A stretch of DNA of 64,000 nucleotides from Piromyces finnis finn (lineage: Eukaryota; Fungi; Neocallimastigomycota). This document shows positions 13,902-59,010 of the stretch, in pieces; the stretch's first letter is position 1; each line of letters starts with the position of its first letter. Made by a program: the position numbers and the translations under genes. The notes beneath the pieces are model-generated. The model made no database searches and was not told where the DNA came from. It saw nothing but the letters and a program-made list of their open reading frames with translations. The stretch covers positions 1,178,001 to 1,242,000 of the forward strand of contig MCFH01000007.1 in assembly GCA_002104945.1 (NCBI GenBank), given 5' to 3'.

Positions 13902-15383
13902 ATGGAAGGTTCAAAGAGAGCTTCTTGTACTACAATTCTTGTAGGAAAAAATGCCACCTATGATGGTTCTACAATGATGGCTCGTACTGAAGATTCAAGT
14001 GCTGGAAATTTTTGTTCAAAAAAACATATTGTTGTAAAACCTTCTGAGCAACCTCGTCATTATAAATCCGTTTTGTCAAAATTTGAGATAGATCTTCCAG
14101 AAGACCCACTTCAATATACTGCAATGCCAAATGCAAATCCAAAGGATGGCATTTGGGGTGAAGCAGGAATAAATACTAAAAATGTAGCCGTATCTGAAAC
14201 AGAAACAATCACTTCGAATGCATTAGTATTAGGTGCAGATCCATTAGTTGAAACTGGTATTGGTGAAGAGGATATATTAACAATAACTTTACCTTACATT
14301 GATTCAGCAAGAAAAGGTGTCGAAAGACTTGGCTCAATATTAGCTAAATATGGTACATACGAAATGAATGGAATTGGATTCCAGGATGAAAATGAAATAT
14401 GGTGGCTTGAAACTATTGGTGGTCATCATTTTATTGCAAAGAGAGTGCCAGATGATTCCTATGTTGTTGGTCCAAATCAACAAGGAATAAAAACATTCGA
14501 TTTTGTCGATGCTTATGGAGAAAAAAAGAATCATATTTGTTCAAGTGATTTGGTTGAATTTATCGTTAATAATAAATTAGATTTATCATTTAATTCATCT
14601 AAAAACTTGAAATGCGAAAGAAATTTTGATGTTAGAGCTGCACTAGGAAGTCATACAGATTTTGATAAAGTGTATAATACCCCAAGAGCATGGTTTATGC
14701 ATAAATATTTAAGTCCAAAAAAATATAAATGGGAAGGTCCAAATTCAGAATTCACACCAGAAAGTCTTGATTTACCATGGTCTTTAGTTCCAGATCATAA
14801 AATAACTGTTGATGATATTAAATATCTTATGTCATCCCACTATCAAGGTACTAAATTCAATCCATATGGAAAGTATGGTGATTTGTCAGAAGCTGGGAAA
14901 TATAGACCTATTGGTATTAATAGAACCAATTTTGTAACACTTACTCAAATAAGAAGATATATGCCAGACGAAATCAAATCTCTTGAATGGATTGCTGTTG
15001 GTTCTTGTATTTTTAATGCTTTTATGCCTCAATATTCAAGAGTTAATGATTCTCCAAAATATATTAAAGAAGTCACTGATGAAGTTACTACTGAAAATTT
15101 CTACTGGATCAATAGAATTATTGCTGCTTTAGCTGATACTCATTATAGTGATGTAATGGTATGGATTGAAAGATATCAGAAAAAAATAGCTGCTAAAGGT
15201 CATGAATTTATTAATAAATATGATAAACAATATCAAGAAGGAAATATTTCAAAGACATTTTTAGATGATGCTAACAATGAAATCGCAAATTTTGTTAAAA
15301 AAGAAACTTCTGACCTTTTAGGAAAAGTATTATATACTTCAAGTTTAAAAATGAAAAATGCATTTTCAAGATCAGATGCTTAA
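13902..15383 (+). CDS. Peptidase family C69 dipeptidase (PepD-like), intronless, bacterial type
   Basis: 493-aa single-exon ORF. N-terminal CTTILVGKNATYDGSTMMARTED with the Ntn-type Cys at residue 9; GIWGEAGIN, YNTPRAW, YRPIGINR and C-terminal MKNAFSRSDA resemble Firmicutes dipeptidase A. Confidence 0.92.
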   Translation: MEGSKRASCTTILVGKNATYDGSTMMARTEDSSAGNFCSKKHIVVKPSEQPRHYKSVLSKFEIDLPEDPLQYTAMPNANPKDGIWGEAGINTKNVAVSETETITSNALVLGADPLVETGIGEEDILTITLPYIDSARKGVERLGSILAKYGTYEMNGIGFQDENEIWWLETIGGHHFIAKRVPDDSYVVGPNQQGIKTFDFVDAYGEKKNHICSSDLVEFIVNNKLDLSFNSSKNLKCERNFDVRAALGSHTDFDKVYNTPRAWFMHKYLSPKKYKWEGPNSEFTPESLDLPWSLVPDHKITVDDIKYLMSSHYQGTKFNPYGKYGDLSEAGKYRPIGINRTNFVTLTQIRRYMPDEIKSLEWIAVGSCIFNAFMPQYSRVNDSPKYIKEVTDEVTTENFYWINRIIAALADTHYSDVMVWIERYQKKIAAKGHEFINKYDKQYQEGNISKTFLDDANNEIANFVKKETSDLLGKVLYTSSLKMKNAFSRSDA

Positions 15384-18700: not shown

Positions 18701-20945
18701 TGAGTATGATTCATTGTTCATGAATTCAGAATAATCTATATTAATATTTATATTATTTGCCATTGATATAAATCCGTAATCATTTTTACTTCCATTTTCA
18801 TTATTTTTGAATATGAAAGATTTAAATTGAATATCAATCTTATAAATATTTAAGCATAATATATATAAATTTTATTAAAAGGTTATATAAATTAATGTAA
18901 TATTTTTGTTAGAATTATATTTTAGAAATTATTATAATAAAATTTTAATGATGACAAAAAACAAAAAGGTACATTATTTGATTTAGTTTTTAAAAATGGT
19001 CCATTTGAAATTGAATTATTAACATATCCATGATTCCATTCAACATTAATAATGTCACCTTCCATATAAATGACATTTCCATTTGATTTAATATTTGATA
19101 TGTTTACATTATCGAATAAAGTGAGTTTACCTTCTAAATTCATTTTTAAAGATATTAAATAACATTCATTTTTTTCTCCATAAATATTAATATTATTTAT
19201 ATTTACATTCTGTAATTCAAGATTTTTATAATATATTGGTATTACTGACTTATAGAAAGTTGAAATATTTTCAAGGGTAACATTTTTTAAATATAATGCA
19301 GATTGTTCATCAAATAAAGATGTTCCAATTAATCTTATAAAATAACAATAGGTAATAATAATAAAAAAGTATTTATTTAATAATAAAATATTTAAAACAA
19401 TGTATATAAAAGAGTTATAATAATAATTAATATAATAAATAATAATAAGTTTACTTTATTCCACGAATTATTGTATTAGAAATATAATTATTACTGTATT
19501 TTGTACCGGAAATAGTTGGAATATAATTTTTATTATCAATATTTTCAAAAATTGAATTGTCAATAAACATTTCAATGTTTTCCCCATAAAACAGTGGACT
19601 TATATCTAATATGAAGTCAAAAAGTGAAAAACGAATTTAGTAATAAAAAAAAATTAGTGTTAAAAGTATTGTTAATATTTTTTTTTTCTATTCTTCAAAA
19701 TATATATACTTTTAAAATGGGATTCAGAAATACATATTTTATTGGCACATTTTGTTCCACTTGCAATATCATATATTAGATTGCCGATTTTATTATGAAC
19801 ATTATTGATTGTTACATTTTGAAATCTATATATAAAGTAATAAAATTGTTTATTATAGATAATTAATATTAAGTGTAATCTTGAATAAAAAATTATTAAA
19901 CTACTTTATTAAATTTCCAGAAGCTTTCATAAAAGGAACTACAGAAGCATCAACTTTAAAATCATTAAATATTGTATTTTTTATAATTAATTCTCCATAA
20001 TATTTTATATATACAAAAGATGCCCTACTAGAACTTGACGATGAAGATATTTTTGTAAATTTACCTTTTATTTTTTTATTATATATTTAAATATTAGTAA
20101 TTGAAAACTACACATAATTGTTACATATTTAAATATTTACAATTGTTATATTCAATTTTCCCGAAAGAAATTTTTGAAATATCATCACAATTATTGAACT
20201 CTGAATTGGAAATTAAAAAACTTAATTGATGATTTAATGTTTGTTCATTTTTAGTAGAGAAATGTAAAACACCAGATCCTTTGATATCACTAAAATATAT
20301 TGATTGTTCAATTATAGTAGTAAAAAACTTAACCTTTTATTTTCATATATAAAATAGTTTCAAAAAATATTTATTTTGTAATAATTACATAAATTTGCAT
20401 GAATCAAGTGTAATGTTTATTTTATTATCATTACTTTTTATTAATGAGCTATTTTCTGCTTCAAAAATTAAAAATCTTCCATTTCCTTTTTCAAAAGTAC
20501 ATTTTTTGAAAGTAATAGAAAAATCCGAACTAGTAACACGAGAATAAAAAATAGAATTTAATTGTTGTGGATCTTGAAAATCATAAAATTTTATATTCTC
20601 AAATTTTATTTTCTGTCCTGTATACTCTTTGAAATTTATAGAAAAATAAAATCCATTTTTTCCTAATTTAATTTCAGTACCTTTTTCTTCCTTTCCATAT
20701 AAAGCAAAATCAATATTACCAGGAATATCAATTTGAAAACCTTGTTGATAGTTTAAAGAGGATTCTATTACATTTTCTGTTATATATACATTGATAGTTT
20801 TTGATATTAAAGAATATTTTTCTATTATACTTGTCAAATTGTATATTGTGTATATTTCATTAGGAATATATATATCAATTGATAAGCATTTATTCAATAT
20901 AATTAAAATTAGTGTAATTATTTTAGTATATTTACATAGCATCAT
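15798..20945 (-). CDS. Large-ectodomain 7TM receptor (class C-like GPCR; signal peptide, beta-helix/pectin-lyase-like repeats, EGF-like module)
   Basis: Signal peptide at 20945 (KIITLILIILNKCLS); Asn/Ile/Phe-rich ectodomain exons; EGF-like CELPNCNDNC...CVCLAGYTGNDC (17488-17811). Intron 17402-17491 leads into six hydrophobic segments (ORF 16255-17352); intron 16131-16269 joins in frame to ORF 15798-16100, supplying a seventh segment and a CILHNSYICNC tail. Internal ectodomain junctions not all resolved. Confidence 0.8.
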
Positions 20946-24347: not shown

Positions 24348-27300
24348 ATGGGTAATGAAACAAATATTAGCAACTATAAATGGCAAATTTGTTATAAAAA
24401 ACCATTATTTAATGGTGAAGAGATAGAAAATTTTGCAATATGGAATTCTGATTTAAACTATTTAAATGAAGTTAAAAATCCAGTAGATATTCTCATTATT
24501 CAATACCATGCTTTTTATAGATCAATATCTAATAATGGAAGCTATGACAGTTTATCAGTAGATTCTGGACCAATTGATTCTGTAACATTGGATATTGATA
24601 ATTATAATGGAAAACCACCAATGAGTGCATATACAAAAGATAGATTTATAGCTAAAAATATCAGTAATGAAGCTCTTCTCAGTAAATTAGATTCCAATAA
24701 ATACAGTCAAAGTAATTTAGAAAGAATGGATAATTCAAATCTTCCTCAATCAGATTATAATACTAATTTAACAGGTTTCAATAATATTAGTTTATGTGTA
24801 GATACAGAAGTACTTTATGGTTCGAAGCGTATTTTAGTTGATGTTGATATTTCTGAATTTATAAGGTCATATGCTGGAAAAATTACTACATTAACAATTG
24901 GTAAATATATCACTAAAAAAATTAAAAAGCTCATAGATATCAGTTCCATTAATTGGATATGGGGTTTCTATTTTTCTAACCTTCAGAATCTAATTGATAA
25001 ATATGGTATTGAAAATTGTCAACAATTTCTTTTTATTTTTAGAAAAGCCTTTCCATACTATGCAATATTTACTGACATAAAAAAGTTAGATGTTTTTGAA
25101 GAAATAAGAGATTTAATTCATGGAATCATATTATATAATGTTGTTTTCCATCAAGATGGTAAGCAAAAATCAAGATGGGAATGGGGAAATATGAAATTTC
25201 AAGATTATATAGCTGCTTTAAGAAATGAAATTAGTTTAAGAACAGATTTTATAGTTCTTGATGCTGAAGTATTACCTCCAGAAAAGAACCAAAGTTTTCA
25301 TCACTATCAAAGACGTCGTTATTATCGTAAATGGATTATGGGTAATAACTTTAAGGGTTGGATATCATTTGACCCTGAATTTAATTCATTAAAGTGTATT
25401 GGTCCACCAGAATTTCCACTTGTTAATGATTTGGATATTTATGAAATGTGTACCTCAACAGAAGTTAAATCTTGTCGTAATTTGATATTAAATATTTTGC
25501 CTCAATTAGATTGGAAAGATAAATTATTAAATCATTATATATGGAAAAAGGTGCTTCGTGAAACTGATTTCCCAAAAGACATTACTGATCGTATTCCATC
25601 TATTAATAATGTTACCCAAATAGAGCTTTCAGATGTTCTTATTTGTCAACCATCAAAACCAGAATTGCCATCAATTAACGATGTTATTGGAAAAACAAAT
25701 AATCAAAAAACATCAAAAAAGAGTAATAGTGATTTACTGTGGAGTGAAAGTGGAATCGAAGGTTCATCTAATCATTTGTGGAAGCAAATTAATCAAACAC
25801 ATAGAGTCTTTAGTACTACAGCTATTGGCAAAACTTATGGTAATGAACGTCGTAAACAAGTTGAAATTAAATTGATTGACATTATGATTAATCTTCTTGA
25901 AAAGAATTTATTAAAATCAATTAATGTATCAACTTCTGGTAATACTAATCAATCTATGTCCATTATTAATAATTCAATGGTATCCCTATCTGATGATGAA
26001 TATGAACTTCAACCAGAAATGGAAGAAATCATTGACTTTATTGATTCCATTATCAAAAATCCTTCTCCATTAGTTGTTCGTATCCTTAACGAGGTTTTCG
26101 GTGGTTATGATGTTGCTATAGAACATTTTAAAGAATTAAATGAAAATCTTTTAAATAATAATATTTCCATATATATTGGTACCAATTCATCATTCATATT
26201 AAAAGAGAATCCTGATGAATTGCCATATAAAAAGGTTTGGGCTATTATGGGTTTAGATGATAATGAAAAATTATATATTTTTGTTCCGGAAAATTGTCCA
26301 AATATTGTTGAATTAGTAATTAATTGCTATTTTAGAAGATTCTTTTATCATGACTCTGGAAAATGTTTACTTTTAGAAAGTTTAATAGTTGCTCAAGAAA
26401 ATCCGGAATATTTGCCTATCTCTCATCGTGTTTTCTATGAAATTGAAAACAGTTCCTATTCAGAATTATTCTATTTTATTCGTAATACTTATTTAATTCA
26501 AAACTCTATGGAAAACAAGATTCAAAATCAAATTGAAAGAGAGTTACTTTCTGCTTATGCTAGTTATATTTGTGATTATTCCCATCACTTATTAGTAGAA
26601 AAATTTGATTATTATGATAAAATAAAAGAACAAGTCAAAATTGGCTATGAACCTCTTCATGAGCCAGAAAAAGAAATGTACGATTTAGTTGCATATTGTT
26701 CATTAGATCCTTTGGGTGATCGTTTAATCAAAGAATTTAGTAAACGTATCGAAAATTCAATGATTAAAAATTGCTATCCAGCAAATTCCTCAGAAGCCTT
26801 AGCATTATCTTATCTTTTTATGCTTTTCTGGAAAGCATGTCGTCGTGTCGCATGGCTGAACATGGAATCTTCATTAATTACAATGAACCCAAGTTTCATA
26901 CCAGATTACGACCAAGTTGCTGTAGCTATGGAAATGATTACTACTCAATCCAATTTAAATATGATGTTTGATTTGAACAGTCATCAATTAGCTAGCTACA
27001 TGCATCCAATATTGAGAAATAATGTCAAAGAAAGTAGAGAAATAAAAGAAAATTTAGTTGTTGAAAGCATGGATAAGGGTACTGATACTAAGAAGGCTAG
27101 ACAATTAGCTAATGCCTTCCTTTTCGTTTATCCTGTTATTATAGATTTAATTCTTGTAAGGTGGATTGGTTCTGGTATTTTTATTAATGGCTACATGGAT
27201 AATACTACTAAAGACGTATTAAACTTTATCTTTATCTTTATTTTCCCTGTTTGTGGTGGTTTAATGAACTCAATTGCTAGAACATGTACATTTTATTATT

Positions 27301-30300
27301 TCTACAAGTCATTTTCCTTAATGACTGCTGCATTCTTAAGAAGATATTCTGCTAGTTTAATAATTTTATCTATTGTTAGTATTGGTATTGGTATTGCTTC
27401 CCTTTTCAGAACCGGTTATGATATTACATATATGTTTTTATTTATGATTTATGCATTTTTATTTGGCCATTATTTAATTCTTTTCTCAATTCTTGGTTCG
27501 ATTAAAGATATTAATATTTGGATTTTCAAAAATAAAGGTCCAAGTATCGCATTACTTGGTTCCGCTATTCTTTTAATTCCAAACTTATTTTGTTACTATA
27601 TATTTAATGATTCTACTCATTCCAAGCTTATACTATCAATATATGATATTGGTTTCATTATTTCTAATCTTTTTATGCTCTTTGGTTATCGTAGATTATC
27701 AAGAAATTATCTTAATTTCACCAACAAAATTAAGATTCCAACTAAGGAGGAAATTCAAGAATACTATGCTATCGATAATCCAAAACCAACAATATTTGTT
27801 GATGAAACTCAAAAGAATTACATGAAACGTATTGCATTATGGGAACGTTCCGCAAGAATCTACTACATGAATAAAATTAATAAAGCTAAAAAAGCTGTTA
27901 AAAAAAACAATAATAGCATTATTCATGAAAGACTCAAACAAAAACCATATGAAGAAGAATTAATGGGATGGTATATTCAACGATCTGGTTCAACTGCTCC
28001 ATTAAAGTACAGTAATGAATGGGATACTATGTTAAAATGCGCATTAGAAGAATTAAAGAAAAAGATTCAAGTAGAAAAGATTAATCGTGGTGATTTATTA
28101 TTTGATTTTGAGCGTGTTGTTATATACTTTGGTATCTTTTATTTTATCTATATTTTTATTGATAAATGGGCTCTTTTATTCCTCGAAGGAAAACCATATC
28201 TTTTCTTACCAAAGAGATTAGCTGCTAAAAAAGAAATTCCATTTGAAGATTATCTTAATGGTTCTCTTTATGCAACTCTTTTCATGTTAATATGTTCAGG
28301 TTTCCTTGAATTAACTCTTTCACGCGTTTTATCGTGTAAGAATAAAGAAAAAAATAGTCGATTAGGTTGGTTTACTTCAAAGGAAATGATCAGTCAATAT
28401 AAGAAAGATGATATTTATGTTTATAAAAATGAATTAGTTAAATTCCTATTAGTTATTATTGTTATGCTAGGTGGTATGACAGGTATTATCTTATTTCTTC
28501 ATGGTTACAAACGTAGTGTATTAGAAACCTATGGTATTGTTGCTTTTGGATTTGTTGGATTTTTAATCGGGCTATATCACAAACTTTTCTTCTATTCAAG
28601 AGAATGTGAAGTTCGTTTGAATAAGTTTTTGATTGTTATTGTCATTTTATGTATTGGATTTTCAGCATTCCTAAAGTATTATTGTAAAACACTTTTCTAT
28701 TCATTCTATGCCACTTGTGTTGGAGGTTGGCTTTTTTGCCTTTGTACTGTATTCATTTATTATGGTGGTTTCAATTCTGATGTTCATTATTCAGTTAATC
28801 TTTCTCCACATTTAGCCTCCTCTGGACAACGTTTCATAGGTCAGAAAAATGATTTATTAGCGAGAGAGAATTTAGAAATTTATTTAAGAAAAATTCCATC
28901 TAAAAATTTCATTACTCCATCAGAAATTCTTTTAAAAAGTGTTTATGCAATGATATTAGATGCTAAAGATCGTTTTAGAAATCTTTCCTCTAGAAATATA
29001 TTAAAAATTTGTTTCCCAGACTCTGAAGATTTACTTCAAAATATTTATGAAAGTTTCTATAATGGTTCAATTAAGGTTAAAATTGCTCCAGAAGAAACAT
29101 TTAATATCAGGGGTCAACGTTACTGTGCAATATCTTTTAAAAATAAGGTTAAGAATGTTTTAGATATATATACCTTTTTACCTCCTATTGCTAATGATTA
29201 CATAGGGGATCAAATTGATCCAAAACTTATTGAATGGGTAGCTTCATCTGTTATTCATGAATATGCTGAACAAAATGCTGGTTACTCACATGCAGAAGCT
29301 GCCATTTTAGAACTTTTAATTAAAGATGGAGAGAAATTAAGTGAATTACCAATTCGTTATCAATATCAAATATGTGTTTCAGATAAACGTGAATTAAAGA
29401 AATTAATTTATGGTTATGTAGAGTTAGAAAAGAGAAAAGCTTTGTTGGATATTGATATTGATTGTGAGTGGGAAAAATTACAACGTAATACCAAACTTTT
29501 CCTTATTCAACTAAATACAATATGGTACAAGTATATCAATAGAATCTCAAAAAAATATAATATTGAAAGTATTAGTATTAATGGTAAGATTCCAAGTGAT
29601 TTAACCAAGCTTCTTCACAAAAAGCATAATAATAACATGAAAATTAATCAAATTATTGCATTTTCAGTTCTTTCCATTTATGTTGCAAGAAGAGTTGGTG
29701 ATTTATGTTTAAATGAAAAACTACCAAAGGAAATTATGGTTCATAAACGTTCTCTCAAAAAGCAAGCTTCAAAAGAATTATTTAATCGTAGATACAGTAT
29801 TTCTCGTTCTATAAGTCGTAAATTACCAAAGAAAGATAAGAGAGAAAATAAATATAATGTCACCAGTATAACAAATACACGTAGTAAATTTGTCGAACAA
29901 TTAGAAGAATTAGAATTCATTATATATTTAGCTTTCACTGGTGATAATCGTTTTGGTCGTGAATTTAGTACTACTAATCATTTCTATATTACACGTTTAA
30001 TCCTCTCAACTATCTTTAAGATTTCCACTAAAATAAGATGGATTCTTACCAAGAAATTTTATTTAAATGAAAAGAATATCAAGAATTTATTAGAAAGAAT
30101 GAAGAAAGGTAGTTTCCGTGATCATTACTACAATAAAGAAAGACAAATTGTTAGAATTGATTCATATAATACCTCATTAAGTAATGTTGTTAGTTTAGTG
30201 GAAAGTAATCGTGAAGGTTATCTTATTGCTACACGTTACTTCCAAAATAAAGCAACTGCCGATTGGAAACCAACATCAAAAGATAAACCATTCAGTATTG

Positions 30301-33227
30301 GTTTTTATAATCGTAAAAATGGTCAATTAATTAAAGAACATATGTTGGATAACAATAAAAATATTTCTTCCACTATCTACTACGAATATTCCAATGAGCA
30401 TCAAGCTTTCCCAAAAAAGATTTACAAGTTACACGGTGAAATTAGTAGTGCAAATTACCGTGATTTCATTCAAATCAGTAAGTCACCAGAGCTTTATGAA
30501 GAACAATACCTTACTAGTAATGAGCTTTCCCTAATTACTATGTCAATACTTCATGTCGTCAGTAGTAGTGGTGAAAAAATAGATATTCAAGTCAATTATA
30601 CTTATGATCATGCTAATACTACATTGTCTTATGCTCAACACCTCTTTACTACTTATAAATGTATGAGTGAAATGTGGGTTATGGTTGTATACTATTCTGA
30701 AAGATGGAGAAATGACGATTTTGGAAAAGATATTCCACCAAAGTTAAAAGAAGTTCATTTTTGCCGTTTAAGTGATCCTCAAACGGAATTTGTTACTGAA
30801 TTCGATTACTCTCATCCACAACATGTCAAAAATAAGACAACTATGCTTTCAAAAGATTCTAAATTTAATCCAATATCTGTTCCAACACCGAAAGAAGTAG
30901 CTGAAGATCCATATTTCCTTTTAAAAAGACGTCCACCACAATCCTATTATTTCAGTAATGAACTTCTCACTTCTCGTCTTAAAGAATCTAAATCCTTCAA
31001 CCCATTTTCAAATACATCAAAGCATTCCTTTTATACTAAACCATTTAGTACTGCTCGTAGTCGTCAAGAATTATGGAGTTTTTGGAGAGCTGGTAATCTT
31101 CCAGGTGTCTATGCTCGTGATATTGATGAAGACATTTTACGTAAAGAAAACGCTCTTAAATCTTATTGGAAGCATCGTGATATGGGTTATCGTGAAAAAG
31201 CTCGCAAAGACCTTCAAAAAGAAAAAGAAGTTCTTGATGTTATCTTAATTGTTAATGATATTCCAACTATCCGTTCTAACCTTCACTTACGTTTCAGTGA
31301 TCTAGCAATTTTGGCCACTGGTGGAGATGCAACTGAAATTTCATCCTCAAAAGATTTGGTAGTACAAAATGCCAAGAATTTTGCTGCCAGTCACAGCATG
31401 TCTTACTTCTCTACTATTTCACATTCTAGATCAAAAGTTGCTAAACCTAACGTTACATTATTATCAATTAATCGTGGTCATACAATTACTATTAGTGAAG
31501 ATGAAGGCAATGATGATATTTTAGATGTTGTCAATTTAGATAGTGGTACATGGCCAACTGGTGGTGGTGGTGTTGGTAGTTGTCGTAGGGATTTAATTGA
31601 TTATTTAGACCGTATTCGTTGGACAGCTATTGTTGAAATTGGTGGTGCTGAATTAGTTCAACGTGATTATCAAATTGAAAGAAACATCACTTCTATCCGT
31701 TATCTCCCTCTCTGGGATAATGATTTCTCTTCACCAAACGAAAATGTCTATCGTGAACATGATTATCTTTCATTACGTAGAAAAACACAAGCAACCAGAG
31801 ATAATATTATTCAATCTATTTTCATTCCAATGGTTAAACTTCTTATTCAAGGTATGATAGAAACCAAATTTACTGAAGATAACTTGGACTGCTATGAAAA
31901 GCTTTTCATTGATATGTACCTATACTTCCAAAAATGTGATTGGTCAATCTCATGGAATCATAAAAAAACACAAATTGTATGGTTAAAAACATGGTTAGAA
32001 TACTGTGAAAAGGAATTAAGTAAGGGCAACTCTTTAAGTGTAGAAATGCCAACTGTTTCTGAAATAGATATGCTCTTCTCTCTTACCACACGTTTATTAT
32101 TACCAATTACTGCTGAAATTCCAAATATATCTGTTTTTCATGCTTCTCACCATGGTGTTCAAGCCATTATTGGCGTTGTTGCCAAAGCTTTATATAAGTC
32201 AAGACTAATTATTTGGGATCATGGTATATTATGGCGTGAGCGTCTGTTTGGTTTATGTTATAGTGATACTATGCCAAGATTTATTCAAAACGGTTTTGTT
32301 GGATTAACGCGCTTAATTTCTTATTTAGTCTATAGTAAGGCTGATTATATTACACCATGTACCAGTATTCAAAATGTTACATGGGAAGAATGGTTAAGTG
32401 GTAAAAAATATAATAATCAAAGAAAAATGATTGAAGCTCGTGAAAAAATTTATCCTATTGTTAATGGTATGAATGTTGCAAAGTTTAATCCAAATCCAGA
32501 ACGTGAATTTTCAACACCATTAGCAGTTATGCTTTCTCATATTAGTTCTGTTAAGGATATTCACAATGCTATCTATTCAGCTAATATTATTGTTAACAAA
32601 ATGGGTATACATAGCTATAAACTTCATATTTATGGTTCTCTTCAAAAAGATCCAAATTATACTGCTGAAACACTTAATCTTATTTCTTCTTTGAATTTAA
32701 CTGAAAATGTAATTTTGAAGGGTTTAGGTAATCCATCCAATGTTCTTCCAACTGGATGGGTCTTTGTTAATTCTTCCATTACTGAAGGTTTACCATTGGC
32801 TATTGGGGAAGCTGGTTTATGTGGATTACCTGTAGTATGTACAGATGTTGGTGGTTCTCGAGAAGTTGTTTCTGATCTTAAAAATAATATAGTCTATGGT
32901 AAGATTGTACCACCACAGAAACCAAATCAATTAGCCATTGCTCAATTATCTGTCCTTTGTATGACAGATGGTCTACAACAGATTGTAAATAAAAAATCAA
33001 AAGATACATTAACAATTGAAGAATTAATAAAGAAGGGCCAAGATGCTATTGAAGCACGTATGAAAGATCCATTAATAAAAGAAAGTCGACGTGAATTAGG
33101 TCTTCTATTAAGAAAAAGAACCATTGAAAAATTCTCAATCACAAGATACTGGAGACAACATGAACAATTATTATGGTTAGGACATTTATCCAATAAACGT
33201 GAAAAGCTAATGAATATGTACAGTTAG
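24348..33227 (+). CDS. Giant membrane-embedded GT4 glycosyltransferase, Gtb3/PelF-like (candidate galactosaminogalactan-type exopolysaccharide synthase)
   Basis: 2959-aa single-exon ORF with two multi-TM blocks (about aa 925-1120 and 1255-1480). C-terminal PelF-like segment HASHHGVQAIIGVV...LIIWDHGILWRER and GT-B motif NSSITEGLPLAIGEAGLCGLPVVCTDVGGSREVV (EX7E glutamates at 32784 and 32808). DSGTWPTGGGGVGSCRRDL...YQIERN...LPLW resembles the conserved block of fungal Gtb3-type proteins as I recall it. Confidence 0.85.
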   Translation: MGNETNISNYKWQICYKKPLFNGEEIENFAIWNSDLNYLNEVKNPVDILIIQYHAFYRSISNNGSYDSLSVDSGPIDSVTLDIDNYNGKPPMSAYTKDRFIAKNISNEALLSKLDSNKYSQSNLERMDNSNLPQSDYNTNLTGFNNISLCVDTEVLYGSKRILVDVDISEFIRSYAGKITTLTIGKYITKKIKKLIDISSINWIWGFYFSNLQNLIDKYGIENCQQFLFIFRKAFPYYAIFTDIKKLDVFEEIRDLIHGIILYNVVFHQDGKQKSRWEWGNMKFQDYIAALRNEISLRTDFIVLDAEVLPPEKNQSFHHYQRRRYYRKWIMGNNFKGWISFDPEFNSLKCIGPPEFPLVNDLDIYEMCTSTEVKSCRNLILNILPQLDWKDKLLNHYIWKKVLRETDFPKDITDRIPSINNVTQIELSDVLICQPSKPELPSINDVIGKTNNQKTSKKSNSDLLWSESGIEGSSNHLWKQINQTHRVFSTTAIGKTYGNERRKQVEIKLIDIMINLLEKNLLKSINVSTSGNTNQSMSIINNSMVSLSDDEYELQPEMEEIIDFIDSIIKNPSPLVVRILNEVFGGYDVAIEHFKELNENLLNNNISIYIGTNSSFILKENPDELPYKKVWAIMGLDDNEKLYIFVPENCPNIVELVINCYFRRFFYHDSGKCLLLESLIVAQENPEYLPISHRVFYEIENSSYSELFYFIRNTYLIQNSMENKIQNQIERELLSAYASYICDYSHHLLVEKFDYYDKIKEQVKIGYEPLHEPEKEMYDLVAYCSLDPLGDRLIKEFSKRIENSMIKNCYPANSSEALALSYLFMLFWKACRRVAWLNMESSLITMNPSFIPDYDQVAVAMEMITTQSNLNMMFDLNSHQLASYMHPILRNNVKESREIKENLVVESMDKGTDTKKARQLANAFLFVYPVIIDLILVRWIGSGIFINGYMDNTTKDVLNFIFIFIFPVCGGLMNSIARTCTFYYFYKSFSLMTAAFLRRYSASLIILSIVSIGIGIASLFRTGYDITYMFLFMIYAFLFGHYLILFSILGSIKDINIWIFKNKGPSIALLGSAILLIPNLFCYYIFNDSTHSKLILSIYDIGFIISNLFMLFGYRRLSRNYLNFTNKIKIPTKEEIQEYYAIDNPKPTIFVDETQKNYMKRIALWERSARIYYMNKINKAKKAVKKNNNSIIHERLKQKPYEEELMGWYIQRSGSTAPLKYSNEWDTMLKCALEELKKKIQVEKINRGDLLFDFERVVIYFGIFYFIYIFIDKWALLFLEGKPYLFLPKRLAAKKEIPFEDYLNGSLYATLFMLICSGFLELTLSRVLSCKNKEKNSRLGWFTSKEMISQYKKDDIYVYKNELVKFLLVIIVMLGGMTGIILFLHGYKRSVLETYGIVAFGFVGFLIGLYHKLFFYSRECEVRLNKFLIVIVILCIGFSAFLKYYCKTLFYSFYATCVGGWLFCLCTVFIYYGGFNSDVHYSVNLSPHLASSGQRFIGQKNDLLARENLEIYLRKIPSKNFITPSEILLKSVYAMILDAKDRFRNLSSRNILKICFPDSEDLLQNIYESFYNGSIKVKIAPEETFNIRGQRYCAISFKNKVKNVLDIYTFLPPIANDYIGDQIDPKLIEWVASSVIHEYAEQNAGYSHAEAAILELLIKDGEKLSELPIRYQYQICVSDKRELKKLIYGYVELEKRKALLDIDIDCEWEKLQRNTKLFLIQLNTIWYKYINRISKKYNIESISINGKIPSDLTKLLHKKHNNNMKINQIIAFSVLSIYVARRVGDLCLNEKLPKEIMVHKRSLKKQASKELFNRRYSISRSISRKLPKKDKRENKYNVTSITNTRSKFVEQLEELEFIIYLAFTGDNRFGREFSTTNHFYITRLILSTIFKISTKIRWILTKKFYLNEKNIKNLLERMKKGSFRDHYYNKERQIVRIDSYNTSLSNVVSLVESNREGYLIATRYFQNKATADWKPTSKDKPFSIGFYNRKNGQLIKEHMLDNNKNISSTIYYEYSNEHQAFPKKIYKLHGEISSANYRDFIQISKSPELYEEQYLTSNELSLITMSILHVVSSSGEKIDIQVNYTYDHANTTLSYAQHLFTTYKCMSEMWVMVVYYSERWRNDDFGKDIPPKLKEVHFCRLSDPQTEFVTEFDYSHPQHVKNKTTMLSKDSKFNPISVPTPKEVAEDPYFLLKRRPPQSYYFSNELLTSRLKESKSFNPFSNTSKHSFYTKPFSTARSRQELWSFWRAGNLPGVYARDIDEDILRKENALKSYWKHRDMGYREKARKDLQKEKEVLDVILIVNDIPTIRSNLHLRFSDLAILATGGDATEISSSKDLVVQNAKNFAASHSMSYFSTISHSRSKVAKPNVTLLSINRGHTITISEDEGNDDILDVVNLDSGTWPTGGGGVGSCRRDLIDYLDRIRWTAIVEIGGAELVQRDYQIERNITSIRYLPLWDNDFSSPNENVYREHDYLSLRRKTQATRDNIIQSIFIPMVKLLIQGMIETKFTEDNLDCYEKLFIDMYLYFQKCDWSISWNHKKTQIVWLKTWLEYCEKELSKGNSLSVEMPTVSEIDMLFSLTTRLLLPITAEIPNISVFHASHHGVQAIIGVVAKALYKSRLIIWDHGILWRERLFGLCYSDTMPRFIQNGFVGLTRLISYLVYSKADYITPCTSIQNVTWEEWLSGKKYNNQRKMIEAREKIYPIVNGMNVAKFNPNPEREFSTPLAVMLSHISSVKDIHNAIYSANIIVNKMGIHSYKLHIYGSLQKDPNYTAETLNLISSLNLTENVILKGLGNPSNVLPTGWVFVNSSITEGLPLAIGEAGLCGLPVVCTDVGGSREVVSDLKNNIVYGKIVPPQKPNQLAIAQLSVLCMTDGLQQIVNKKSKDTLTIEELIKKGQDAIEARMKDPLIKESRRELGLLLRKRTIEKFSITRYWRQHEQLLWLGHLSNKREKLMNMYS

Positions 33228-34085
33228 GATAATTAGATTTAAAAAATTTTTAAAAAAAGAAAAAAAAAAAATTAACATAAATATATCACATAATTAATTA
33301 AAAAAAATATTACCATTTTTTATAATCATTAATACTATAATTAAATTATTATATCTATTCACAACCATTTTTTATAATTAATATTATTAAGTTATTATAT
33401 TTATTCATATTTTATAAAATATTTATTGTATTTATTTATAATATTTTAATTTTTGAGATCTATTAAATAAATTTATTAATAAATAAATTATTTCTTTTCT
33501 TATGCATATCTTTTTAATTTTAATAAAATTTTAATCAATTAATAATATATATAATAATTATATATTAACTGAAAGTAATATAAAATAATAAAAAATAAAT
33601 ATAAAAGGAATAAAATTAGATATATAAAAGCATTTCAAATGTTTTATTATATATATTTTCTTTGTCAATGGTATATATCCTATTATTATGTATATATTAT
33701 ATCATTATTATTTATTAATTTATTAATTTCTTTTTTTTTATTTATTTTTTTATTTATAAATACAAAATAATTAATTTTTTTCTTTTATGACTATATATAT
33801 AAACATAAATATATTTATATAATAAGAAAATTGATAATAATGTTTTCTATTATGGAAAAAAATATATAATAAATTATTGACTTTTATATTTTAATCCTAA
33901 ATTTCAATACAAACCTCTAATTAATATATAATTATAATTAAAAAAATTATTCAACTAAAACAAAAAAATTAATAATATATTGATTAGAAAATAAAAAAAA
34001 AAAAAAAAAAAAACTGAAAAACAATTATAAATATTAAAAGAAATATAAAAAAAAAAACATTATATTTATATTAATTAATAATTTA

Positions 34086-34943
34086 TTATTGTATTAAACA
34101 ACAACATTTACTGGTTTTTTCTTGTTTTCCATTTGATTCTATTTGTGCTGATTTTGTGATAACTTCAGGTTTAGGGGTATTAATATCTTTTTCTTTTTGC
34201 GCTGTATTATCTGAAGCTTCTTTATTTTGTTTTACATTAGGAAAAACTATTTCTACGTTTTCATGGAATAAATTAGATGAAACAGTAGGCTGTTGAGTAT
34301 TTGTCTGTTCTGATACCTTAGATTTATATTGGCCTGATAAAATAGCTCTTAAAAATCTAGGATAACTTTCTGTTTTCATCATTTCAAATGCTTTATTCAT
34401 CGCAGGTAATAGAATATCAGGATGTAAATTGTTTCCATCATATATATATTGAGTTAAGCGGGATCTAATAACTTGGGATAAGTTTATTTCTTTAGGTGCA
34501 CCAATTTGTATATAGCTACGTGAAATATCTTGTAATATATATGATAAATATTGTCTATCACCCTCTTCTAATTGTTTTGTTTGTTGTTGATGTGCTAGGT
34601 TTTGCTGACTAGAGTAATCTGATTGCAAATTTCCATTTTTTATTTTATCGAATTCAAGGTATCTACTTCCTTGATTAGACGACGATTCTTGATCTTCACT
34701 ATTTCCTGCTGTTAATTTATTAAAACGCTTTAAGGCTTCTGTTCTATAAATGCATGCTTCTGAATAAAAATCTACGTTATCGTGACTAAGTTCTGTTAAA
34801 CAAAATGCACGATAATCAGCATAACTATATGGTGGTGGGAATTTATTAGTTAATATTCCTCTAAGTGGATATTTTGAACGTTGTTCTGACTCCTCATTAT
34901 TACCGACTTTATTTGTTGATGTATTATTACCATCTCCATCCAT
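34086..34943 (-). CDS. RGS-domain protein (regulator of G-protein signalling) with C-terminal CaaX box
   Basis: 285-aa single exon. PPPYSYADYRAFCLTELSHDNVDFY...YIQIGAPKEINLS...AFEMMKTESYPRFL is an RGS box; C-terminus KCCCLIQ-stop. Confidence 0.9.
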   Translation of the reverse strand: MDGDGNNTSTNKVGNNEESEQRSKYPLRGILTNKFPPPYSYADYRAFCLTELSHDNVDFYSEACIYRTEALKRFNKLTAGNSEDQESSSNQGSRYLEFDKIKNGNLQSDYSSQQNLAHQQQTKQLEEGDRQYLSYILQDISRSYIQIGAPKEINLSQVIRSRLTQYIYDGNNLHPDILLPAMNKAFEMMKTESYPRFLRAILSGQYKSKVSEQTNTQQPTVSSNLFHENVEIVFPNVKQNKEASDNTAQKEKDINTPKPEVITKSAQIESNGKQEKTSKCCCLIQ

Positions 34944-36858
34944 TATAAAAACTGAATATTTATTCTTTATTCTTTAAATATATATATATTTATTTATATA
35001 TATAACTATTTCAATATTTTTATAAAATATTAAAATTCTCCAATCTTTTTCTTTTTTTTTTTTTTTTTCTTATTCTTTCTATATATAAACTAGTAAAGAT
35101 ATAAAAATAATATTTCAAGATATTTTCTTTATTTAATCTTCCTATTATTTTTAAAAGTACATATATATATTGTATATTTGAAATAGATATAATTTCCGAT
35201 TTATTGGTTTATCAATAATACCATTATATAAAATGTAAAATATATATAAAAAAATAGTTATAAGTAAAATATAAATTATATATCTTTAAAATAATTATAT
35301 TTAATAATAATTAGTATTAAGTGAAGTTAATAATATGTAATAACGATGTCATTTTATATTTTATTAACTTATTGATATTGCAAACTTATAAATTTGTTTT
35401 TGTTTTTTGAAAATTTTTTTATGAATTTAAAAAATTTTTAAAATTTATTTCTTATATTAATATTTGAAATACTTATTACAACTACTAATTAATATAATAT
35501 CTTTCTTTCAATAATCTTTTATGCTTTCACTTCAAGATAATCCTATTATGAAATGAATATTTTTAATGGATTATATTAAATTAATAAATTAATGAATTAA
35601 ATAAATATTCCAATTTTTAATTCAGTTATATCTTGTTTCTTCATATATATAATTATGAATTTTTGAAAAACTCGTATATTAGTCATTAACTATTTTAAAA
35701 AAAATTTACAAGTATTTTTATTTTTATTATATTTTATCTCTAATATTTATGTAATATGAATTTTTAATAAAATTATTAATCCTCTTTTTTTTTTTCCTTT
35801 TTTATTGAAATCTCGATATTATTTTTAAGACAATAATAGTATTTACAAATAAATCATTATATTTAAATAAGATCGGTCTTTAATTGTTCAAAGTTAATGA
35901 TTCATAATTCTTTATTACAATAATAGGTTTTATTTTTATAAATAATTTATTATATTTTATATGATATAATTATAGTAATATTATTTTGGAACTTTCTAAT
36001 GAATAAGTAATAATAAATAAAATGATATTTAATTACTTTTCTTATTATCAATTCTATATTCAATAATTCAATAATAATAATCTAAATGTTTCTTAGAAAC
36101 TTATTATAATCACAATTCTTACTTTTTTTTAGACAAAATTTTATATAATAATTTCTCTGTATTTTTTCTTTACTTTTTTTTTTTTTTTTTGAAAATGAAT
36201 ACAAACTTTATTAATAACAAAATTATAATTAGATTCTATTTTTCATTTAAATAATAATTATTTTAATTACTACCAACCACTATAATATTTGTTCAAAAAA
36301 TAGATTTTATTATAATTTTATTACATAAATAAAAAAAAGCATTATAACAATCATTTATCTCATATATATAATTGTTATTTTATTTTTCTTTATATACAAT
36401 TAAAATTTTATTTGTTATAATTATAAAAAATATATATGCATTAAATTTTCTTTATTTTTAACTTTATATTATTTCTCCTTAAATTCTTAATATTTATAAT
36501 TATGGATTAAACATAATTAAAACATAAATAGATTAAACTTAATTCTATATAAATGAAAATACTATACAATTTAAAATTTAAAAATTACAAACCATATTTT
36601 TATATAACAATTTTTTTTTTAGAGTATCAATAATTTAAATTTTTATTATTATATGAAAAAAATAAAAAAGTTTATATATATAGTTTTAAAATTGACTAAA
36701 TTTTTATTTTTTTTTGTTTATGTAATCTTTTAGTTTTTCAATTTTAAGTTTAATATTTTTTATGTTTTGTATTTAAGAAAGAAAAAAGCATTATTGTTGT
36801 TAATACACTATAAATAATTTTTTTTTAACTTATTTATATGAAGTAAATGAATACTAAT

Positions 36859-57642: not shown

Positions 57643-59010
57643 ATGGCTGAAACTTTCCTTTTTACTTCTGAATCTGTTGGTGAAGGTCACCCAGGTAAAT
57701 ATTTAAATCAGTAAATAAATTAATATTATTAAAAAGAAAAAAAAAAAGTCAATAATTGAATATATGTATAAAAGCAAAGTATATTAATAAATATTAATAT
57801 TAATATTAAATAGATAAGATCTGTGATCAAATTTCTGATGCTATTCTTGATGCCTGTCTTGCTCAAGATAAGTTCTCTCACGTTGCTTGTGAAACTGGTG
57901 AGTTTATTAAAATGAAAAATATTAAGAATTTCTAGTAATAATTAAATGAAAATATATTAATAAAAATTTAATTATTGTTATCAACATAACACAGCTGCCA
58001 AGACTGGTATGATTATGGTCTTTGGTGAAATTACCACTAACGCTCAAATTGATTTCCAAAAGGTTGTCAGATCTGCTATTAAGAAGATCGGTTATGATGA
58101 TTCTTCCAAGGGTTTCGATTACAAGACTTGTAACGTTTTAGTTGCCATTGAACAACAATCTCCAGATATTGCTCAAGGTCTTACTCAAGTTTCCACTAAC
58201 GTCGAAGATATTGGTGCTGGTGACCAAGGTATTATGTTTGGTTACGCTACTGATGAAACTCCAGAATTAATGCCACTTTCTCACATGTTAGCTCACAAGC
58301 TTAACCTTAAGTTAGCTGAACTCCGTAGAGATGGTACTCTTCCATGGTTACGTCCAGATACCAAGACTCAAGTTACCGTTGAATACAAGATTGAAAACGG
58401 TGTTACTACTCCATTAAGTGTTCACAATGTTGTTATTTCTACTCAACATGCTCCAGAAATTACTACTGAAGAATTACGTAAGGAACTTGTTGAAAAGGTT
58501 GTTAAAACTGTTATTCCAGCCAACTTATTAACTGAAAAGACTATTTACCACATGCAACCATCTGGTAAGTTCATTATTGGTGGTCCACAAGGTGATGCTG
58601 GTCTTACTGGTCGTAAGATTATTGTCGATACTTACGGTGGTTGGGGTGCTCACGGTGGTGGTGCCTTCTCCGGTAAGGATTGGTCTAAGGTTGACCGTTC
58701 TGCTGCTTACGCTGCTAGATGGGTTGCTAAGTCTTTAGTTAATGCTAAGTTATGTCGTCGTTGCTTAGTTCAAATCTCATACGCTATTGGTGTTTCTGAA
58801 CCATGCTCTATCTTTGTTGATACCTACGGTACTGGTGTTAAGTCCAATGCTGAAATCTTAGAAATCATTAAGAAGAACTTCGATCTCCGTCCAGGTGTTA
58901 TTGTTCAAGAACTCGATCTCTGGAGACCAATTTACCAAGAAACTGCTTGTTACGGTCACTTCGGTCGCTCTCAATTCACTTGGGAACAACCAAAGGAACT
59001 TAAGTTCTAA
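57643..59010 (+). CDS. SAM2: S-adenosylmethionine synthetase (methionine adenosyltransferase)
   Basis: Exons 57643-57694, 57814-57897, 57995-59010. [31 protein letters not shown] and GGGAFSGKD signatures; C-ending codon bias typical of a highly expressed gene. Confidence 0.98.

Follow-up and report, generated by a model that had tools for sequence, protein, structure and literature searches.

A giant intronless membrane synthase gene of the gut fungus Piromyces finnis, read as a PelG-PelF-like fusion in a sister lineage of Gtb3

A stretch of 64,000 nucleotides from the gut fungus Piromyces finnis (NCBI GenBank assembly GCA_002104945.1, contig MCFH01000007.1, positions 1,178,001 to 1,242,000 of the forward strand; hereafter the window) contains an uninterrupted open reading frame (ORF) at 24348..33227 of the plus strand, which runs from an ATG start through 2,959 codons to its stop codon with no internal stop. 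The encoded protein, here called the synthase, is probably a single-chain giant membrane enzyme in which a PelG-like export domain is joined to a PelF-like polymerase, and which would make an alpha-linked exopolysaccharide rich in N-acetylgalactosamine (GalNAc) or galactosamine (GalN). In the bacterial Pel system, PelF is the transferase and PelG is the inner-membrane transport subunit (PMC8892547). The family is already known, in that its members stand in public databases as "hypothetical/DUF3492" entries and the parts that concern GH114 and the Agd3 homologues are in print. What is new here is the fusion of a PelG-like membrane domain of the MOP fold to a PelF-like polymerase, with a conserved zincin-like HExxE...H...E module between them.

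The synthase gene

The gene is real and intact. Orthologues of 2,966-3,026 amino acids (aa) can be aligned across 100% of the 2,959-aa protein, which means that the start and the end of the ORF are right and that no intron is needed. An earlier reading of the window from its letters alone, hereafter the sequence-only reading, had described an 8.9-kb ORF without introns, and both the ORF, at exactly the same coordinates, and the full-length orthologues agree with that description. The window is strongly AT-rich, with a guanine-cytosine (GC) content of 12-32% per 2-kb bin. The top protein matches of the synthase all come from Neocallimastigomycota, and therefore the gut-fungal origin of the gene is sound. 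Full-length orthologues at 79-89% identity are found in Anaeromyces, Neocallimastix, Orpinomyces and rumen-type metagenomes, and two further groups of paralogues, ~40% and ~33% identical to the synthase, are present in gut fungi. Many chytrids, and Creolimax, encode relatives of full length at 28-36% identity.

The C-terminal transferase

The C-terminal end of the synthase was recognized by Pfam as two adjoining domains, DUF3492, the N-terminal Rossmann half of a PelF-type GT-B transferase, and Glycos_transf_1, the C-terminal half of a GT4 transferase. The Pfam models PF00534 and PF13692 score 62.1 and 57.4 bits against gathering cut-offs of 26.4 and 27. The two glutamates of the EX7E motif, E2813 and E2821, and the conserved phosphate-binding lysine of GT4 transferases, K2736, are 100% conserved across 102 family members, bacterial PelF included. 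The DUF3492 half also has a glycine-rich loop, GGGGVG, in which G2407, G2408 and V2409 are 97% conserved across the 102 sequences. By these Pfam scores, the EX7E motif and the lysine, the transferase is assigned to family GT4, and its activity is predicted accordingly.

The top NCBIfam model for the synthase is PelF (NF038011, an equivalog), with 101.9 bits against a cut-off of 100, a match that covers aa 2584-2871 and only model positions 164-456 of 489. For each giant protein that was tested, Gtb3 among them, PelF is likewise the top NCBIfam model, and bacterial PelF proteins of ~500 aa score 145-193 bits on it from end to end. The synthase is not a stand-alone PelF, given that the PelF-like part forms the C-terminal end of a eukaryotic membrane protein of 2,959 aa. 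A PDB sequence search returned no PelF-like structure, and its best match was a TagF-like polymerase (E 7e-4). The PelF-like GT4 C-terminus and the intact EX7E motif of the sequence-only reading were thus both borne out.

The membrane domain

A multi-transmembrane core had also been noted from the letters, and a hydropathy scan resolved it into 12 predicted membrane helices, six at aa 923-1112 and six at aa 1257-1470, with a basic, conserved 145-residue loop between helices 6 and 7. An AlphaFold model of the domain, built from a 46-sequence alignment, has a pLDDT of 81.8 and a pTM of 0.80. When the model was searched with Foldseek, the first 17 matches were all transporters of the MOP superfamily, at modest E-values of ~7e-3. 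With VIA-align, against 48,161 chains, 13 MOP structures (MATE1, NorM, MurJ, WzxE and others) matched at Z 17.3-21.2 over 368-396 residues, a fourteenth (MurJ, 5t77) matched at Z 13.9, and the next, unrelated chain reached Z 8.1. By this model, the membrane domain has a MOP-superfamily (MATE/MurJ/Wzx) fold.

The link to PelG was drawn from bacterial loci. In two bacterial pelF loci, the gene after pelF encodes a weak Pfam match to PelG in one case and an unannotated 526-aa protein in the other. The profile of the membrane domain was aligned with these two pelF-adjacent proteins by hhalign, with a probability of 94% and a score of 67 over 413 collinear columns that span all helices; control scores were 17 for reversed, 10-17 for column-shuffled and 28-34 for block-shuffled profiles. 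The MOP fold and this collinear alignment with PelG-like neighbors of bacterial pelF are the reason to read the synthase as a PelG-PelF fusion in which the G-like part comes first. Both observations would also be compatible with another MOP subfamily. On one bacterial contig, a 334-aa DUF3492-only protein (235-1239) is encoded directly upstream of the PelF gene and is a half-transferase paralogue.

Since the membrane domain has 12 helices and the transferase depends on nucleotide sugars of the cytosol, the N-terminal, the middle and the transferase regions, which are the three large soluble parts, should all be cytosolic. The layout from N- to C-terminus would then be a cytosolic N-terminal region, the 12-helix MOP domain, a cytosolic middle region with a zincin-like motif and a beta-rich part, and a retaining GT4 transferase of the PelF type. 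In the proposed mechanism, the GT4 domain would polymerize a sugar activated by uridine diphosphate at the cytosolic face of the plasma membrane, and the chain would leave through, or alongside, the PelG-like domain. Polymerization and export would be joined in one chain, whereas bacterial Pel splits the same jobs between the PelF and PelG subunits.

Relatives and phylogeny

In an exhaustive HMMER search with the transferase domain, the top ranks go to giant proteins of 2,400-4,400 aa, and proteins the size of PelF (~500 aa) appear only at 28-31% identity. Further sources of giants are Corallochytrium, Fabomonas, Cyanophora, Gonapodya, Bifiguratus and many Ascomycota. One of the giants, from Aspergillus alliaceus (P0030, 2,890 aa), has a gene that lies head to head with one for Agd3 (CBM87/CE18), as does gtb3 of A. 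fumigatus, and is taken as a genuine Gtb3 for that reason. The synthase is 32% identical to P0030 over the C-terminal 800 aa and 20% identical (E 3e-17) over the membrane domain. When separate regions were searched by BLAST, the whole giant family shared the membrane domain and the ~200 residues that precede DUF3492, whereas only chytrids, Creolimax and Corallochytrium shared the N-terminal 880 aa and most of the middle region. Two of the giants carry an additional annotation at one end, transportin in P0022 (Siphonaria, 3,632 aa) and MFS in P0027 (Physocladia), and are probably merged gene models.

A tree of 58 transferase domains was made with IQ-TREE and rooted on bacterial PelF. PelF, all giants together, and the two clades into which the giants divide, A and B, each have support of 100/100. 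Clade A consists of Blyttiomyces, Dinochytrium, two Phlyctochytrium species and Chytridiales JEL0842, then Bifiguratus, and then Ascomycota including Gtb3. Clade B consists of Creolimax and Corallochytrium, then Gonapodya, and then chytrids and the three gut-fungal paralogue groups, among them the synthase described here. Blyttiomyces and Dinochytrium have members in both clades, so the split between A and B is older than the separation of chytrids and other fungi. Among the best 150 cluster representatives, a strong gut-fungal amino-acid bias is seen only in clade B sequences. On this tree, the gene belongs to an ancient sister or paralogue lineage of Gtb3 and is not its orthologue, and all giant eukaryotic proteins are monophyletic apart from bacterial PelF.

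The sequence-only reading had called the protein Gtb3/PelF-like and had proposed homology searches and a phylogeny. Of this, the likeness stands, given that PelF is the top model, Gtb3 can be aligned at 32% and both giants belong to one superfamily of synthases; an assignment to Gtb3 itself does not, given that the synthase lies outside both the PelF and the Gtb3 clades. The membrane prediction and structure search proposed alongside gave the 12 helices and the MOP fold.

The N-terminal and middle regions

A Pfam search with the first 2,300 residues of the synthase found no match. The N-terminal ~880 aa also have no match by Pfam in each of 28 family members, by PDB sequence profile or by Atlas features. 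The region is conserved in gut fungi, chytrids, Creolimax and Corallochytrium, and was not detectable by BLAST in ascomycete Gtb3.

The middle region, for which a profile search of the PDB gave no match, was modeled as several domains with a pLDDT of 75 and a pTM of 0.50, a usable model. Within it, aa 1518-1665 resemble the M35/aspzincin peptidases 2x3a, 1g12 and 1eb6 (Z 6.8-7.3, root-mean-square deviation 3.2-3.7, 122-130 residues), a match that is weak when taken alone, and the zincin-like structure 3e11 (Z 5.9). Inside the matched stretch, H1637, E1641, H1648 and E1655 are invariant in 36 aligned sequences. The motif reads HExxE-x6-H-x6-E, in place of the HExxH of zincins. The pattern HExxE-x(4-9)-H-x(4-9)-E is present in both fungal clades, in Bifiguratus, Arthrobotrys, Fabomonas and others, and a pattern search did not find the motif in the Gtb3 proteins of Aspergillus and Podospora. 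A search for stand-alone homologues of the zincin-like part found none. The leading guess is that the part may be a metal-dependent catalytic or regulatory module.

Farther along the chain, the beta-rich part at aa 1921-2229 has only weak likeness to folds of the single-layer sheet or RHS-YD type, with weak RHS-like rows in an Atlas shape search. The linker before the transferase is modeled as helices at aa 2235-2299 and with low confidence from about aa 2328. Across the giants, Gtb3 among them, much of this linker is conserved: the alignment with P0030 begins at aa 2170, and the last ~200 aa before DUF3492 are covered by BLAST in ascomycete Gtb3 and in Fabomonas.

Transcription

Transcription, on which the sequence-only reading had made its proposal depend, is very probable. 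In four sequencing runs, made in three studies of a single organism, the contigs contain 74-100% of the words sampled from the ORF (at least 97% in three runs and 0.74 in the fourth). Between 30000 and 35999, the contigs of the four runs cover the synthase ORF to ~33236, just past the stop codon, and the downstream RGS gene (~34025-34968), and every run drops to zero depth, or almost so, across 33600-33999 and 35000-35199. Coverage of genes but not of intergenic DNA is the pattern of RNA assemblies, and therefore points to transcription. One 7,316-nt contig lies on 30000-31565 in minus orientation from its own position 1, and its calculated reach is ~98 nt upstream of the ATG.

The contigs of all four runs break at two conserved words, 31536-31565 and 32745-32776, and two other sequences join at 31536/31539. 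The joining sequences are probably transcripts of paralogous synthase genes that share the word of the glycine loop, and one of them is deeper than this gene.

Partner enzymes and the likely product

PelF and Gtb3 both make alpha-1,4-linked, GalNAc-rich polymers (PMC9860509; PMC9030451). The product of the synthase would be likewise an alpha-linked, GalNAc/GalN-rich exopolysaccharide, because these two enzymes bracket clade B, and because families GH114 and CE18 are abundant in gut fungi and no gut-fungal synthase of the Gtb3 clade was seen among the best 150 cluster representatives. GH114 is among the most abundant CAZy families of anaerobic fungi, for which a polymer like galactosaminogalactan (GAG) has been speculated (PMC6054980), and many Agd3 (CE18) homologues are listed in Neocallimastix, Piromyces and Anaeromyces (PMC7229062, text and supplement). 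The gene is thus the best candidate for the maker of the polymer on which the GH114 and CE18 enzymes of the phylum would act. A protein search with Aspergillus Agd3 was dominated by orthologues from Aspergillus and Penicillium, and was uninformative for gut fungi.

None of these partners stands near the synthase. Of the other ORFs of at least 90 aa in the window, 0 of 20 matched an epimerase, CE18, GH114 or GH135, in a search that did not exhaustively cover the short exons of intron-rich genes, and tblastn with Aspergillus Agd3 found nothing in the window. At three orthologous loci, two inspected with 10 kb on each side and one with ~2.3 kb upstream only, the flanks contained no partner from the GAG cluster, and the synthase was not clustered with GalNAc-specific enzymes at any inspected gut-fungal or chytrid locus. 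The sequence-only reading had recognized no cluster partner in the window and had called the gene stand-alone. The former agrees with the domain and tblastn searches, and the latter holds for the window, but not for the phylum, where the published CE18 and GH114 families are found elsewhere. That reading had also not known a GAG- or Pel-like matrix in a gut fungus to be described; a GAG-like polymer had in fact been speculated (PMC6054980), and it is for the synthases that no paper was found. At the Anaeromyces locus, a gene for an aldose 1-epimerase (mutarotase; 26347-28276, minus strand) is found on the far side of the RGS gene, ~7 kb downstream from the orthologous synthase.

Alternative readings

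The same architecture might serve another polymer, an alpha-glucan, a GlcNAc (N-acetylglucosamine) polymer or a heteropolymer, unrelated to GH114 and CE18. This is possible, if doubtful: clade B is old and separate and has extra conserved domains, GT4 enzymes use many donors, and at no locus examined was there clustering with GalNAc-specific enzymes, but both characterized relatives make alpha-1,4 GalNAc-rich polymers (PMC9860509, PMC9030451), and the abundant GH114 and CE18 of gut fungi have no other candidate synthase of this family in view. It is unlikely, in turn, that the membrane domain acts as a Wzx/MurJ-like flippase for lipid-linked sugars and that the enzyme builds a lipid-linked glycan or a glycolipid. 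WzxE (Z 17.7) and MurJ (Z 18.4) are indeed among the structural matches, beside MATE exporters, but the closest transferase relatives by sequence are PelF proteins with a PelG-like neighbor gene, Pel is considered a synthase-dependent system that uses no lipid carrier (PMC8892547), and Pfam found no polyprenyl-phosphate transferase domain in the synthase. About as unlikely is a gut-fungal orthologue of Aspergillus Gtb3 that makes GAG proper. The overall size and layout, the identities of 32% and 20% to the cluster-located Gtb3, and the presence of CE18 and GH114 in the phylum would fit such an enzyme, but the two proteins fall in separate 100/100 clades that are both held by chytrids, ascomycete Gtb3 has no detectable counterpart of the N-terminal region or of most of the middle region, and no partner gene is nearby. 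Several points weigh against the PelG-PelF fusion with a GalNAc/GalN-rich product as well. The Pfam PelG model (PF16933) has no match to the membrane domain, and neither the MOP fold nor the hhalign match tells PelG from other MOP families. Sugar and linkage are predictions, and the bracket argument assumes that specificity was kept for more than 1 billion years. The lack of a Gtb3-clade gene in gut fungi is judged from the best 150 representatives, and the partner enzymes are taken from published tables for sister genera. The contig sets of the four runs total 20-45 Mb, which is transcriptome-sized, and the RNA nature of the runs is a guess.

The sequence-only reading had suggested a horizontal or retrotransposed origin as an explanation for the lack of introns. 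That a genome with introns contains an 8.9-kb ORF free of them invites such an account, as does the N. californiae orthologue, which is likewise a single intronless ORF. Recent transfer from bacteria, or a retrocopy, is nevertheless very improbable. The giants form one clade apart from bacterial PelF, and the branching inside clade B is broadly consistent with organismal relationships. The flanking genes are syntenic across three genera: the RGS gene downstream of the synthase has counterparts of 72-74% identity in the same place in Anaeromyces and Neocallimastix, and the 186-aa ORF upstream of the synthase is conserved in Anaeromyces. The GC content of the synthase, 29.5%, and its GC content at third codon positions, 18%, are within the range of neighboring genes. 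The Anaeromyces orthologue is split into two ORFs, which is one apparent intron, one Neocallimastix paralogue likewise has one, and two chytrid homologues from Dinochytrium contain 1-2.6 kb of introns. A horizontal or retrotransposed origin was rejected on this synteny, composition, phylogeny and introns in relatives, which indicate that the gene is vertically inherited; intron loss in an old resident gene reads as the simpler and more economical account.

Features of the window

The coordinates of the synthase, of its parts and of neighboring genes are collected in Table 1. Other ORFs of the window match Peptidase_C69, RGS, Sad1/UNC and SAM synthetase.

Table 1. Parts of the synthase and neighboring genes, in positions of the window
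Feature	Residues (aa)	Position	Strand	Basis or remark
Whole synthase gene	2,959 in all	24348..33227	+	Single-exon ORF
N-terminal region, predicted cytosolic	1-~900	24348..27047	+	Conserved, no domain match
12-helix membrane domain	923-1470	27114..28757	+	Hydropathy, AlphaFold model, structure searches
Zincin-like domain, predicted cytosolic	1518-1665	28899..29342	+	Structure model of middle region
Conserved HExxE-x6-H-x6-E motif, candidate metal site	H1637 E1638 E1641 H1648 E1655	29256..29312	+	Alignment
Beta-rich domain	1921-2229	30108..31034	+	Model secondary structure
Helical linker before transferase	2235-2390	31050..31517	+	BLAST coverage, model helices
DUF3492	2397-2672	31536..32363	+	Pfam PF11997, E 2.6e-16
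Glycos_transf_1	2723-2863	32514..32936	+	Pfam PF00534, E 6e-17
EX7E catalytic motif, EGLPLAIGE	2813-2821 (E2813...E2821)	32784..32810	+	Residue conservation
Peptidase_C69 gene, single ORF		13902-15380	+	E 1e-163
ORF upstream of synthase	186 in all	20385-20945	-	Syntenic in Anaeromyces, 35% identity
RGS-domain gene		34086-34943	-	Syntenic in Anaeromyces and Neocallimastix
SAM synthetase exon		58009-59007	+	GC 40%, clearly above other coding sequence in the window

Significance

The GAG system has been treated as confined to Pezizomycotina, with Trichosporon added by transfer, and a bacterial origin has been left open (PMC4817252). The tree shows Gtb3 to be a single branch within an old family of eukaryotes, given that its own clade has chytrid and mucoromycote members and that the sister clade reaches unicellular holozoans. 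A broader proposal can be put forward only tentatively: that giant PelG-PelF fusions are ancient in eukaryotes and arose there, with two or more lineages in early fungi, that clade B makes an alpha-1,4-GalN(Ac) matrix polymer for the GH114 and CE18 enzymes of gut fungi, that adhesins of the GAG/Pel type are ancestral to fungi, and that the HExxE module is functional. If this were true, these cationic adhesins would be an ancestral trait of fungi and not an acquisition of Pezizomycotina, and the zincin-like module would have a working role in the enzyme, catalytic or regulatory.

The size of Gtb3 has hindered structural analysis (PMC9860509). The reading of PelG-like and PelF-like parts gives a single-chain model of the Pel synthase core, and flags a conserved domain with a metal motif. 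The synthase and its paralogues are obvious candidates for the makers of the substrate of GH114 and CE18, which would bear on attachment to fiber and to partners. A search of the accessible literature found no paper on synthases of the Gtb3/PelF type in chytrids or gut fungi, and a search for galactosamine in Neocallimastix walls returned nothing relevant.

Comparison with known systems

Gtb3 of Aspergillus fumigatus (~300 kDa), represented here by P0030 of A. alliaceus, is of similar size to the synthase (2,890 and 2,959 aa), has its membrane domain at the same relative position, shares the conserved linker and the C-terminal PelF-type GT4 domain at 32% identity, and belongs to the same eukaryotic superfamily. 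The synthase differs in that it belongs to the other ancient clade, its N-terminal 880 aa and most of its middle region are not detectably shared, and its HExxE motif was not found in Aspergillus Gtb3. It is also not clustered with agd3, ega3, sph3 and uge3.

With the core of the bacterial Pel synthase, PelF and PelG, the synthase shares DUF3492 and Glycos_transf_1, the EX7E motif, the lysine and the glycine loop. Bacteria have two proteins, of ~500 and 500-620 aa, with the genes in the order F then G, whereas the synthase is a single chain in which the G-like part precedes the F-like part and ~1,800 residues are extra. No equivalents of PelD or PelE were recognized in the synthase, which lies outside the PelF clade.

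The M35/aspzincin zinc peptidases (deuterolysin, AsaP1 and the Grifola peptidyl-Lys peptidase) give a weak fold match that covers the motif helix of the synthase at about the position of the HExxH of the peptidases. The synthase differs from them in its HExxE, in a Z of ~7 with no match at the level of sequence, and in that the module is embedded in a synthase and predicted to be cytosolic. Lastly, the MOP transporters (MATE, MurJ, Wzx) have 12 helices in a 6+6 arrangement, as does the membrane domain of the synthase; the sequence identity is 7-10%, and the synthase differs in its 145-residue loop and in that the domain is embedded in a larger enzyme and is not a free transporter.

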